Shown here one piece after another: positions 18,611-26,395 of a DNA stretch of 64,000 nt. Within the stretch, counting starts at the first letter, position 1. Every line of letters begins with the position of its first letter. Under the pieces are notes generated by a model. The model was not told the origin of the DNA. It saw only the letters and a program-made list of their open reading frames with translations, and searched no databases. The position numbers were made by a program, and so were the translations under genes. Where the stretch lies: assembly GCA_052426225.1 (NCBI GenBank), contig JBNJNM010000011.1, positions 1,922,001 to 1,986,000 of the forward strand, read 5' to 3'. The DNA comes from Zancudomyces culisetae HAW-14-8. Taxonomy: Eukaryota > Fungi > Kickxellomycota.

Positions 18611-18769
18611 ATGGTTGGAGTACCCTGCACACACGGAAATAATGCATGCCCTCAAGAGTGCAAGTGTCTATGCTTCTGTTGCAAGAGAGGGTTGAGACAC
18701 CCTTCAATCACCAACAAAGGAAGTGGAGCTCCATTTAAAAAGCCATCAGTATCTGAAGGTCAAAACTAA
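18611..18769 (+). CDS. 52-aa Cys-rich microprotein (paralog A): MVGVPCTHGNNACPQECKCLCFCCKRGLRHPSITNKGSGAPFKKPSVSEGQN
   Basis: Strong start context AAAAAAATGG, GC-elevated island, 7 Cys, and a motif shared with the ORF at 26246-26395. Confidence 0.7.
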   Translation: MVGVPCTHGNNACPQECKCLCFCCKRGLRHPSITNKGSGAPFKKPSVSEGQN

Positions 18770-21335
18770 GTTGCCTTTGCTTTTCCTAGATTTTTCTCTT
18801 TTTTTTTACGTGGAAAGAGAAAAAGTGGGAGAGAGTAGATCATATTTATCAAAAAACAACAGAGGGTCTCGCTCTTGATTACATTTGCCTGCTTTATCAT
18901 CCTTTATTGTTTAGTCCATCATTTCCTATTTATTATAACTCTGTGATGACTCTCATCAACATGATATTTGTAGTTTTACCTACTATTTAATATTGCTTAT
19001 AAAACGCAATAAAGCCGTGGTAGCATCTTTTATTCCCCCATATGGGTTTTGTTCTTGCCAGTTATCAAAGTAATGGGGTTGCTTAATGTTCAAAAGATAT
19101 AATTTTATATTGATCACAAGAAGGTGTGTGGATAGGAGAAGGTAGGAGAGAAGAAGAGGTTTAGATGAACTACGACTGTTCAGTTTATGCATGTCACAAT
19201 TTTTCATAGCATGACTTTTTCGAACGAAAAGTATGAATGAAGAATGAGAGCTTGTAATAAGCCTAGGTTTAGAAGCAATTAAGGATGAAAAGCTAACATA
19301 CGTTGCAACAGTAGGTTTGGCTTGGGAAAGAAAAAAAATCGAGTGATGGGTGGTACGGGAATAGCTGCATTGTTATAAGGCTTTTGTTTTAAGGTAAATG
19401 CTCAAAGTTCGCAAAAGCAACATTTTTTGTGTTGCTCTATAGAGTTTATTAATATACTGGTGACTATTAACACGTACAGAGTGAGTGAATCGAACATTCC
19501 ATTGATGTTTTTTTTTCTTTTTCTTGCGCGAGTAAGTAGGTGTTGTTCTTTGAAAATTGTGTTTGGTGTATCCAAGATATTGGATAGTCATTTGATTGAA
19601 AAAAAATGGAAAAAGCAGCATTGTGAAAGTAGAAGGGGAAACAAAACAAATGGTAAAAACAAAGTGAAACGAAAATCAATGGGGATTGACTGGTTGACTT
19701 GCGGACTCAAATTGGTTTTTGTGCAAACAATCTGAGGTGGCAGGTTAGCTAATTTTGCAGAAACTACGGAGCCTTTTTTTATAATGTAGAGTACAGAAAA
19801 AAAAATTAACAAAGGACCGGTTTTGGTTGGTTGGATATAGGGAGCGAGAATTGGAAAAAAGTAATAACATTACCATTCATACCCAGTGGGTCAACGAAAA
19901 ATAATAAATGGAAGGGGTAGGGAAGAGGGTTGATAGGTAATAGTGACTGGAGAGAAAATAGAAAAGGAAAGAAACAAGGGAGAGGTGGGCAAAGTAAAAA
20001 TAAAATTAAAAATCGGACCAGAGTTTACAGGTGAAATGCTAACAAAGGAAATCACGAAAATTTTTTTTTTGTTAATGCAAGAAAAAGAAAAATTAAAACC
20101 CGAAATGCGAAAAAGTAGAGGTATAACAAATTAAAACGCAAGCCATTAAATATAGGTATGAATGGAATTGAAGATAATACAAAAGAAAAAGAAAAAGAAA
20201 AAGAAAAAGAAAAATAAAGGAAAAAAAAGGCGGCATAAAAGGAGAGGAGAATCAGTGACAAAATAAAGACAAATGACTTGTTTCATTTTTGTAAATCCCT
20301 TGGAATTTCAATTTTTGTTTTTGCCGTTTCTTTTTTTTCCAAAATTCTACCAAAATAAAAAAATAACAAAATAGGGTAGATGGATTGGTGTAAAAAAATA
20401 ATACAAAAAAGAGAAATATTTGCATTTGCTTAAATTACAAGATATTAGGGAGATATTCGTGCAATACGCATATGTTTTTTTCTTTTTAGCTTTTATTATT
20501 TAATTTTTTTTATTTTGTTGGAAATGTGCAAAGATGAAATATACGTTTTTGAGACTACTGATTGAATGACCAGAATACAAATATGTAAAATGAATAAAAC
20601 CCAAGATAAAAAAAAAAGCTTGAACAACCACACGTAGATTTTAGTGCGTATGTATGTAATGCAAAATTCGAGTTTTTTTTTTTTTCCTAGGAAGAGAAAA
20701 AAAAATTTTTGGAATGTTGGTGGAAATATTCCAAGTGAGGTCAGTTTATTGGTATTTGCAAATACGAGCCAGGAAGATTGACTTGACAAATGTAGATATA
20801 ATGAAGAAAGGATATTTTTAATAAGAAAAAATAAAGTAGACCCAACATATATAATAGTACACATTTACACACACATACACACAAGACAAAGAATAAATAG
20901 AATGGTGTTTTTGTGACGAGTAATGTGGGTAGCTAAAAAGACATTGTAGAATATAAGCTTGAAGATTTGTTAAAAAAAAGTTTGTTTATATATTTTTGAG
21001 TATTTGTAGAGTTATTTTTTCCTTACAAGAACGACCAAGGCGGCAACATAGAATACAATACCGATTAGATATAGAGATAAAAGGAAAACAAAACAAAAAT
21101 AAAACAAAAAGATCAAAAGTAATCTTCAGAGAACAAGAAGGAAGGAGAAAAGAAGAGAAATAATAATAAAAAAGGACAACAGAAATAGATATTTTTATAG
21201 AAGGCCGATTGACCAAATAGCAAATATAAGAGGATAAATGAAATAGCAGAAAGGAGGAAATAAACGGGAATAGTAATAGATAATAAAGACGCGAAGAGAA
21301 ACATAGATATCAACAAGTAAATAAGTAAATGAAGG

Positions 21336-25345: not shown

Positions 25346-26245
25346 ATTCTTACAGATTATTTTATTTTTATTTTAATTGATTTTTATTTTCGTGTAGATA
25401 TTTGTTGTATTTTATTTTATTTTATTTTATTTTACTTTATTTTATTTGACTTGAATTATATTCCTATTGTATAGCATCAAAAAAAAAATTGGCTGCAGGT
25501 AAAAATATTAAAAAAATAAAGAAAAATTTTTATACTATTTTCCTATATTTTCTTTTATGATATTTTTATTAGCCTATTAGAAAGTTATTGGATTAAATTT
25601 TTTTTTTTTATAGCAAATCGTAGGATTGGGTTTTTCCGATTTTGCCTATAAGCAAATTTTTTTTTAGTATATATTATGTTGCTCAGGTTTTTACTCATCC
25701 CGTTATTTGATCAAATCTTTATATATACCTAGACACTAATCAATTAATCATACACGCTACTTTCAATGCAAGAATCAAGGTATTTTTCAAAAACATCCTA
25801 GTACTTGTAGCTTTACATTATTTATATTCATTTTATTGCTATCATAATAAAAATACAAAAGATATCAAAGATTTTATCAATTGAAAAACTATAAATTACT
25901 ATTACTGTTACTATTACTATTACTACTGTTATCTTTATAACCACCTCTCTCAAAGAAAAACTCCAAATATTAAAATAAATAAATAAAAACACCTCCATTT
26001 TGGATCACTTGTATAATCTTCATCATACTTAAAACACTAATTGTATTACACTCTAAAACCCAGCAAACTCAAACTTGTCTCCCCCTCCACATTTGTAATC
26101 ATAAAATATACCCACACATTAGTAATCTATATTCTATCACCATCTCACCATCTCACTCTCTATATAATCGTTCTTTGGTTTGGTTTGGTTTGTTTTGGTT
26201 TTTTTTTTCAAATGTAAATACAAGTTTTTATGGTTATGGTGTAAC

Positions 26246-26395
26246 TCAACACGTGATTGTAAAAGCTGGAACTTCTAATGTCTCGTGCATCTTTATGCGT
26301 TTGTTATAACAATCTATACAAAGACAGTCGCATTCTATTGGGCACTTTGCTTGGTGCTCAAATGTTGTATGGGTGCAGTCAAATATTCCTTCCAT
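26246..26395 (-). CDS. 49-aa Cys-rich microprotein (paralog B): MEGIFDCTHTTFEHQAKCPIECDCLCIDCYNKRIKMHETLEVPAFTITC
   Basis: GACATGG start context, 7 Cys, and the CTH...CPxECxCLCxxC motif shared with 18611-18769. Confidence 0.65.
   Translation of the reverse strand: MEGIFDCTHTTFEHQAKCPIECDCLCIDCYNKRIKMHETLEVPAFTITC

Follow-up and report, generated by a model that had tools for sequence, protein, structure and literature searches.

Very probable paralogous cysteine-rich microprotein genes on either side of the DBF4-RVB1 gene pair of Zancudomyces culisetae

Two open reading frames of about 50 codons each, lying 7.7 kb apart in the genome of the mosquito-gut fungus Zancudomyces culisetae and referred to here as microORFs A and B, share a homology that is not due to chance and a conservation that acts at the protein level through frame-specific purifying selection. 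It is very probable that A and B are real genes, paralogous to each other, and belong to a lineage-restricted orphan family of microproteins. The fuller account that we favour, at about even odds, is that they are anciently duplicated single-exon genes for cytosolic or nuclear microproteins of about 50 residues with a metal-folded N-terminal region. The features concerned are as follows, with positions counted from the first nucleotide of the window, i.e., the whole 64,000-nucleotide stretch of DNA that was analysed.

18611..18769, + strand: microORF A, 52 codons plus TAA; single-exon model from the first ATG of the open frame; GC 44.7%
18626..18700, + strand: conserved core of A, residues C6 to H30, CTH-x4-CPxECxCLCxxC-KRxxxH
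21336..23702, + strand: DBF4 homologue, 788 aa (Pfam Dfp1_Him1_M and zf-DBF), downstream of and co-oriented with A
23779..25345, - strand: RVB1/TIP49 homologue (Pfam TIP49), downstream of and co-oriented with B
25345-24985 and 24860-23779, - strand: RVB1 exons, separated by a GT..AG phase-1 intron (24984-24861)
26246..26395, - strand: microORF B, 49 codons plus TGA; single-exon model from the first ATG of the open frame; GC 38.7%
26285..26377, - strand: conserved core of B, residues C7 to H37, CTH-x8-CPxECxCLCxxC-x2-KRxxxH

Coordinates and strands bear out the arrangement given in a preliminary description of this DNA, with DBF4 and RVB1 convergent and both microORFs pointing inward. The gap from A to DBF4 is 2.6 kb, and that from B to RVB1 is 0.9 kb. 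The Pfam search of RVB1 was performed on each exon separately rather than on a joined model, and neighbouring ORFs of 67-125 aa gave no significant Pfam match.

Translation of A and B gave the 52- and 49-residue peptides previously described, both under 60 aa, and their alignment reproduced the reported common elements M-x-G (M1 and G3 invariant), CTH and CPxECxCLCxxC and added a further one, K-R-x3-H. Within 25-31 residues, six Cys and two His do not vary; they come in the order C, H, C, C, C, C, C, H and with the spacing C-x-H ... C-x3-C-x-C-x-C-x2-C ... H; L, F or I stands between the core cysteines, which are followed by K-R-x3-H. The earlier statement that conservation is confined to Cys/His ligands was slightly too strong, since these residues are indeed kept but invariance extends to T, P, E, L, K, R, M and G. 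Divergence of spacers and tails was confirmed, only the N-terminal 30-37 residues being conserved. Direct reading of both sequences also upheld the lack of a signal peptide, no N-terminal hydrophobic stretch being present in A or B. Both start codons lie in good context (purine at -3, G at +4). An AlphaFold2 model built on the two-sequence alignment was unconfident (pLDDT 49).

The likeness of A and B was evaluated by several statistics, all patterns having been defined after the pair was seen. The pattern CPxECxCxCxxC matched the 27-Mb genome twice, at A and at B (reversed control 0), and a non-overlapping N-terminal pattern, M-x-G-x2-3-CTH-x4-8-CP, was likewise limited to these loci genome-wide. 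When B was shuffled, the alignment score had p = 1.25e-4. Of the 309 small ATG-initiated ORFs in the window, only A and B contain at least 6 Cys in 25 aa; an order-3 Markov simulated genome of 27 Mb contained 9 comparable Cys-rich ORFs, from which about 3e-6 chance pairs would be expected per genome. The raw Smith-Waterman score of 58 was equalled by pairs of low-complexity F/L/I-rich ORFs in the window, and the case therefore rests on the composition-conditioned and pattern statistics.

Selection on the encoded peptides was evident from a comparison of reading frames and of silent and replacement sites. The score of 58 obtained in the ORF frames compares with 38 or less in the 17 other frame pairs, silent sites are saturated (pS 0.77 vs pN 0.37, Fisher p ~0.006-0.01), and different codons are used at 9 of the 16 identical residues. 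Both frames are intact, and the indels between A and B are multiples of three (4 and 2 codons). Saturation of silent sites together with retention of residues excludes neutral decay since the duplication. Flanks and downstream regions showed no shared homology, save for one short upstream element described below. Both microORFs form local GC peaks at gene-like levels, non-genic GC being 31.3%. Codon-usage log-likelihood, an uninformative score here, ranked A sixth and B 31st among 72 intergenic small ORFs. ORFs antisense to A and B were rejected as low-complexity and unconserved.

The upstream element consists of TTAGAWATTT plus a G-run and occurs in the orientation of the respective microORF at two places.

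17798..17824, + strand: upstream element of A, 0.8 kb 5' of A; blastn E 0.017
26835..26859, - strand: upstream element of B, 0.45 kb 5' of B; blastn E 0.017

This pattern was found genome-wide at these two loci only (control 0). The most specific proposal, to which we lean somewhat less than evenly, is that A and B represent a family, hitherto undescribed and restricted to Harpellales, of Cys6His2 metal-cluster microproteins, each having a conserved promoter element of its own.

In agreement with the preliminary description, which recognised no named family, searches for relatives returned little beyond the pair. Two very large protein libraries yielded no relative. Word-index searches with A and B gave no match, a profile run against 1.84 billion representative proteins gave 0 matches, no Pfam-A family was matched by either microORF (hmmscan, E <= 10), the ESM Atlas gave no usable match, and look-ups of the exact sequences of A, B and DBF4 found none on record. 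A metagenome scan with the core pattern yielded 21 matches, all chance-like, and scans of prokaryotic and viral contigs yielded no confirmed relative. Within the genome, protein searches with A and B each retrieved only the query itself, and the loose skeleton Cx3CxCxCx2C was swamped by TGT/TGC microsatellites; intermediate patterns gave, among the matches listed, just a ferredoxin and noise. A separate Cys-rich microORF 0.9 Mb away was rejected as unrelated to A and B. In Smittium angustum, RVB1, cyt-b5 and DBF4 remain together, and no A/B motif, HMM match or intergenic Cys-rich ORF was noted within 10 kb on either side of that locus; Coemansia DBF4 loci were likewise devoid of motif, HMM match and Cys-rich ORF.

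Metal-thiolate sites, such as those of metallothioneins, the Ace1/Mac1 Cu clusters and pre-SET Zn3Cys9, typically show CxC spacing of this density. A and B would be transcribed and translated, and their N-terminal 30-37 residues would most likely fold around metal, either as two Zn(II) sites or as a small Cu(I)/Zn thiolate cluster; the alternating CxCxC spacing would favour bridging thiolates, and the C-terminal tails would be unconstrained. Binding of Zn or Cu(I) is predicted here from ligand spacing only. The suggested resemblance to tesmin/CXC and metallothionein sequences held as regards motif flavour but not further, given the lack of Pfam matches at E <= 10, the Cys content of 13-14% and the aromatics.

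Like the metallothioneins N. crassa Cu-MT, CUP1, cyanobacterial SmtA and wheat Ec-1, A and B are small, lack a signal peptide and have dense CxC/CxCxC; some metallothionein families use His as an extra ligand, as A and B may, and metallothionein genes are often local duplicates, as A and B are. The 52 and 49 residues of A and B fall within the metallothionein size range (below about 10 kDa). Set beside the metallothionein norm of about 15-30% or more Cys in CxC, CxxC or CC, Cys makes up 13-14% overall (7 of 52 residues in A, 7 of 49 in B) and 37% (A, C6-C24) and 26% (B, C7-C29) of the cores, with CxCxC and CC motifs present. Metallothioneins have few or no aromatics, whereas A has F22 and F41 and B has F5, F12, Y30 and F45. 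Also unlike metallothioneins, A and B have a long non-Cys tail and no sequence homology to the family (no match to Pfam metallothionein models at E <= 10). Metallothioneins bind several metal ions in thiolate clusters and are metal-inducible, properties that are putative in A and B. Short CxC runs ending in His recall the Cu(I)-cluster motifs of copper-fist proteins (Ace1/Amt1 regulatory domain; Mac1 REP CxCx4CxCx2Cx2H), and the C-x-H element is one that we take to resemble the copper-fist Zn module, but those motifs sit in large DNA-binding proteins with different spacing and A and B have no Pfam copper-fist match. The C-x3-C-x-C-x2-C flavour is shared with tesmin/TSO1 CXC and pre-SET Zn3Cys9. 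In contrast with tesmin/TSO1 CXC, A and B have an extra CxC step and lack the first half, CxCx4Cx3YCxC; the spacing is only half-site-like, and no match to PF03638 (CxCx4Cx3YCxCx6Cx3CxCx2C) was obtained.

Several other explanations were weighed against this one. A and B may be real paralogous microproteins in which the Cys string serves a purpose other than metal binding, as a multiply S-acylated membrane anchor or a redox or regulatory peptide. The same coding evidence (unique patterns, pS vs pN, frame specificity) would apply, and the hydrophobic residues between cysteines, the basic KR patch that follows and the absence of a signal peptide would suit S-acylation; strict conservation of His, Pro and Glu and of the exact Cys spacing, however, speaks more for a folded metal site than for an acylation string, and we consider this explanation unlikely. 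Less probable again is that A and B are not independent genes but conserved-peptide leader ORFs or first exons, possibly within long 5' leaders of DBF4 and RVB1. Conserved-peptide uORFs are known in fungi (the arg-2/CPA1 attenuator peptide), and like them A and B are short, conserved at the peptide level, and followed on the same strand by a larger gene; conservation in A and B covers only the N-terminal part. Unlike the arginine attenuator uORF, they precede two unrelated genes at distances (0.9 and 2.6 kb) that are long for fungal leaders, and the interval from B to RVB1 contains a TATA-like stretch. No homologous downstream exon was found, no peptides are common to A and B further downstream, and no canonical donor occurs 3' of the conserved part of B (none of GTAAGT/GTATGT type, whereas the RVB1 intron uses GTAAGT); A and B thus do not appear to be exons of larger paralogous genes. 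That A and B are not genes at all, but chance ORFs or dead relics no longer expressed, we judge slightly more improbable still. The failure to find an ortholog in the searched collections or at the S. angustum locus, the raw score matched by low-complexity window pairs, the post hoc patterns and the merely borderline GC and codon score of B are all in line with it, but it is opposed by the Markov null, by two non-overlapping patterns each unique to these loci, by the lack of both CTH and an ATG start in all 21 metagenome matches, and by saturated silent sites with kept residues, which exclude neutral decay.

The weakest rival, and one that we find barely credible, holds that A and B are relics of an LRRNT cap (CPxxCxC...C...L..P), e.g., from a host-derived LRR gene. 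The best matches of the PDB profile search were LRRNT-like, namely lamprey VLR N-terminal caps (E 0.1), A and B resemble PF01462 in having CPxxCxC with a C and a basic/GL stretch after it, and one insect-derived gene is known in Z. culisetae (PMC5026252). On the other hand, a six-frame whole-genome search with the PF01462 model gave two unrelated places below the cut-off, neither of them a microORF, and hmmscan at E <= 10 also missed both loci. A and B are intracellular by sequence. Their first Cys is preceded by 5-6 residues, the last Cys comes after 4 residues instead of 6, and the ORFs end at 49-52 aa with neither LRRs nor homologous exons downstream. Also very improbable, if a little less so, is that the TGA of B is read as selenocysteine, which would give a C-terminal Cys-Sec pair. 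In frame after the TGA are GTT ACA CCA TAA (26245-26234). No SECIS was matched by Rfam models (E <= 10, positions 16000-29000) or noted by eye, and alignment of the UGA with Cys or Sec was not obtained, as the sole homologue, A, ends in TAA and the tails do not align. The possibility is retained because UGA is decoded as Sec in Z. culisetae and the majority of the selenoprotein genes known in this fungus have no recognisable SECIS; among fungal selenoprotein genes, 11 of 16 lack a recognisable one (bioRxiv 10.1101/314781).

Annotation of fungal genomes routinely overlooks genes of fewer than 60 codons, and the A/B pair indicates that the reality of such tiny genes can be argued from sequence evolution alone. 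Interest is bounded at present by the number of copies, two in one species. If confirmed, the pair would offer a concrete target, at low cost, to RNA-seq re-mapping, peptidomics and assays of metal binding. The metal and redox biology of Z. culisetae is unusual, this species being among the few fungi that use selenocysteine. Confirmation of the pair would add an orphan family of metal-binding or otherwise Cys-dependent microproteins to the biology of this insect-gut symbiont, and on the most specific proposal above A and B would represent the first metallothionein-like system described in Kickxellomycotina.

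Two short open reading frames (ORFs), A and B, were present in the window as translated in the preliminary description. In both, the start codon is the earliest ATG in the open frame and is set in a context of purine at -3 and G at +4. Coordinates, Pfam matches and named homologues also agreed with the placement of these ORFs on either side of a convergent DBF4-RVB1 pair:

18611-18769 (+), microORF A, 52 codons followed by TAA
21336-23702 (+), DBF4, identified by Pfam and named homologues
25345-23779 (-), RVB1, two exons, identified by Pfam and named homologues
26395-26246 (-), microORF B, 49 codons followed by TGA

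The residues invariant between A and B were M1, G3, C-T-H, C-P-x-E-C-x-C-L-C-x-x-C and K-R-x3-H. The common motif described earlier (M-x-G, CTH and CPxECxCLCxxC) held at every position; K-R-x3-H had not been included in it. Six Cys and two His were invariant, within 25 residues of A or 31 of B. The spacer after CTH was 4 residues in one ORF and 8 in the other, a 2-residue insert preceded KR in B, and both indels were in frame. The C-terminal tails could not be aligned and conservation was limited to the first 30-37 residues, in keeping with the divergence of spacers and tails noted before.

Pairwise BLASTP of A against B gave E = 1e-4, and the Smith-Waterman score of 58 was equalled or exceeded by 25 of 200,000 shuffles of B (p = 1.25e-4). 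This p value alone is insufficient, as it would not survive multiple testing; when open segments of the window were compared in 952,459 pairs, 105 reached a score of 58, and approximately 12 low-complexity pairs rich in F, L, I and S scored 58-66 after removal of true repeats. A density of 6 or more Cys per 25 residues was unique to A and B among the 309 ATG-initiated ORFs (25-150 aa) of the window. A 27-Mb sequence simulated with an order-3 Markov model trained on the non-genic DNA of the window yielded 9 ORFs of this type (i.e., starting with ATG, 40-80 aa long and with 6 or more Cys among residues 1-32), which scored 20-33 against A and B and at most 53 among themselves; the expectation for chance pairs was about 3e-6 per genome (36 pairs x 5.8e-4 for location within 8 kb x 1.25e-4). 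In the genome searched (27.09 Mb in 25 contigs, of which JBNJNM010000011.1 comprises 5,239,357 bp), CPxECxCxCxxC matched at the A and B loci only (reversed control, 0), as did the non-overlapping N-terminal pattern M-x-G-x2-3-C-T-H-x4-8-C-P. Since each pattern is specific, either half can serve to define the pair, leaving the other as a test. The core pattern matched 21 times in a metagenome collection, compared with about 15 matches estimated from base composition (an estimate good to order of size for the collection), and the 21 places all lacked CTH, a suitably spaced ATG and an ORF comparable to A or B. From the rarity of Cys-rich ORFs, the simulation, the specificity of both patterns within the genome and the chance-like metagenome matches, we conclude that A and B are homologous.

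The match was limited to the ORF frames (score 58); none of the 17 remaining same-strand frame pairs scored above 38. In the alignment of 30 codons, pS was 0.77 (saturated) and pN, which residue-based alignment biases downward, was 0.37 (Fisher's p approximately 0.006-0.01). Different codons were used at 9 of 16 identical residues, including Arg (AGA vs CGC). At the DNA level, the flanks did not form an inverted repeat, and the downstream regions had neither a peptide in common nor a significant blastn match. Since equally far neutral drift would leave no likeness, purifying selection has acted on the peptide sequence ever since the two copies arose by an old duplication. Weaker support for coding status came from local GC peaks of 44.7% at A and 38.7% at B, compared with 31.3% for non-genic DNA and 39-47% for genes; when non-genic DNA was taken in 150-nt windows, only 4.9% reached the GC of A and 11.7% that of B. 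The codon-usage score did not discriminate and was uninformative, and ORFs antisense to A and B were of low complexity and unconserved. Thus, the frame-limited match, the difference between pS and pN and the in-frame indels all point to the interpretation proposed from the outset, that A and B are very probably real paralogous protein-coding genes.

An element of about 25 nt, TTAGA(T/A)ATTT, then 8-12 consecutive G, then GGGGAAG, occurred upstream of each ORF and in the same orientation as that ORF:

17798-17824 (+), copy 0.8 kb upstream of A
26859-26835 (-), copy 0.45 kb upstream of B

The pattern was found nowhere else in the 27-Mb genome (control, 0), where runs of at least 8 G or C, at about 1 per 10 kb, lead to an expectation of approximately 0.1 chance matches; blastn of the element in a local comparison gave E = 0.017. 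These results are suggestive of a retained cis-element, which may be a promoter or leader element. Directly 5' of A, 16671-18040 is a 1.4-kb non-repetitive stretch with GC at the level of genes (up to 47%), stops in every frame and a G11 run at 16691, and may represent a non-coding RNA, a long 5' leader or the remains of a decayed gene.

The window (GC 34.5%) holds few genes, with about 13 long ORFs per 64 kb. At 60375-61031, overlapping ORFs of 252 aa (+) and 267 aa (-) contain tandem repeats of about 170 nt, of which several frames on each strand are open (pair scores 178-270). A coding-like inverted pair, 37961-38165 and 62367-62666 (peptide identity about 70%; frame scores of 133 and, on the opposite strand, 118), probably represents either a duplicated gene fragment or a dispersed repeat.

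As each ORF precedes its neighbour on the same strand, A by 2.6 kb (DBF4) and B by 0.9 kb (RVB1), the alternative that they are first exons, or ORFs within long leaders of DBF4 or RVB1, rather than independent genes had to be considered. Restriction of conservation to the first 30-37 residues would agree with this alternative. However, no homologous second exon was found downstream of A or B, and the distance from B to the RVB1 ATG is just 0.9 kb. Moreover, no GTAAGT- or GTATGT-like donor follows the core in B, while the 124-nt intron of nearby RVB1 (GTAAGT...AG; exons searched one by one) begins with GTAAGT. On these grounds, we prefer to regard A and B as putative single-exon genes. Flanking ORFs of 67-125 aa had no significant Pfam match.

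The nearest DBF4 homologues of Zancudomyces culisetae, a mosquito-gut fungus (Harpellales, Kickxellomycotina), were from Smittium angustum (38% identity) and Coemansia (33-36%). In S. angustum (MBFU01000064.1, 18101-41025), RVB1, a cyt-b5 gene and DBF4 adjoin in partial synteny, so the RVB1-DBF4 neighbourhood appears to be older than the Smittium/Zancudomyces split; orientation differs there, and no cyt-b5 gene was found between RVB1 and DBF4 in the window. No motif, HMM match or intergenic Cys-rich ORF was detected within 10 kb on either side of the S. angustum DBF4 locus, and the non-syntenic Coemansia DBF4 loci were likewise negative.

In collections without records of this genome or its close relatives, word-index searches of 5.8 billion proteins with A and B gave no match, nor did a profile search of 1.84 billion representatives, for which the 59-position profile had little power. 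Pfam (E ≤ 10) returned no family, in agreement with the initial failure to recognise a named one. The ESM Atlas gave no usable match, no relative was confirmed among prokaryotic and viral contigs, and exact-sequence look-ups returned no record of A or B. Among the matches listed from protein queries and pattern searches, there was no third copy in the genome, which could contain divergent further copies. At 2901649-2901837 (-) of the same contig, a small Cys-rich ORF of 62 aa carries CCCCIC...CILCC in its C-terminal part; it has no relationship to A and B and resembles proteins of the Cys-string or membrane-tail type.

The absence of a signal peptide from both proteins was confirmed, and neither had a hydrophobic segment. 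Eight ligand-type residues (C, H, C, C, C, C, C, H, in that order) were invariant, their tight central spacing being C-x3-C-x-C-x-C-x2-C, and Pro, Glu and a KR patch were conserved beside them. Such tight Cys spacing is typical of metal-thiolate sites, including those of metallothioneins, the Cu(I) clusters of Ace1/Mac1 and the Zn3Cys9 of pre-SET/CXC. A set of eight ligands could accommodate two Zn(II) ions in tetrahedral coordination or one small Cu(I) cluster. By analogy with these sites, we give the proposal that A and B are metal-binding microproteins an even chance; outside metal binding, a Cys string that is S-acylated and precedes a basic patch is a reasonable alternative. The AlphaFold2 model built from the two-sequence alignment had low confidence (pLDDT 49). 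Unlike classical metallothioneins, A and B contain aromatic residues, and this identity was rejected on that count and for want of a match to Pfam metallothionein models; Cys makes up 13-14% overall, but 37% (A) and 26% (B) within the cores. The resemblance to tesmin/CXC remarked on previously was borne out only as half-site-like spacing, but membership was rejected as there was no Pfam match. Weak PDB matches to lamprey VLR caps (E 0.1) led to consideration of an LRR N-terminal cap, which was rejected; the HMM missed both loci, and signal peptide and LRRs were absent.

B ends in Cys-TGA, followed in frame by GTT ACA CCA TAA (26234-26248, -), such that read-through would append U-V-T-P ahead of TAA. 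Z. culisetae decodes UGA as Sec (PMC12611240; 10.1101/314781). No SECIS was seen near B by Rfam (E ≤ 10) or by eye, and A offers no Cys or Sec aligned with this TGA. Sec at this position is thus unsupported by the sequence, yet is kept as a reading since 11 of 16 fungal selenoprotein genes have no recognisable SECIS (10.1101/314781). For strain HAW-14-8, RNA-seq exists along with the PacBio-HiFi assembly, reported as 27.18 Mb in 26 contigs with 35.6% GC (PMC12611240).

A and B thus constitute an orphan family, so far of two copies in one species, that would fall in the broad, polyphyletic class of small Cys-rich metal-binding proteins and presents a clean case of probable microgenes recognisable through evolution alone.
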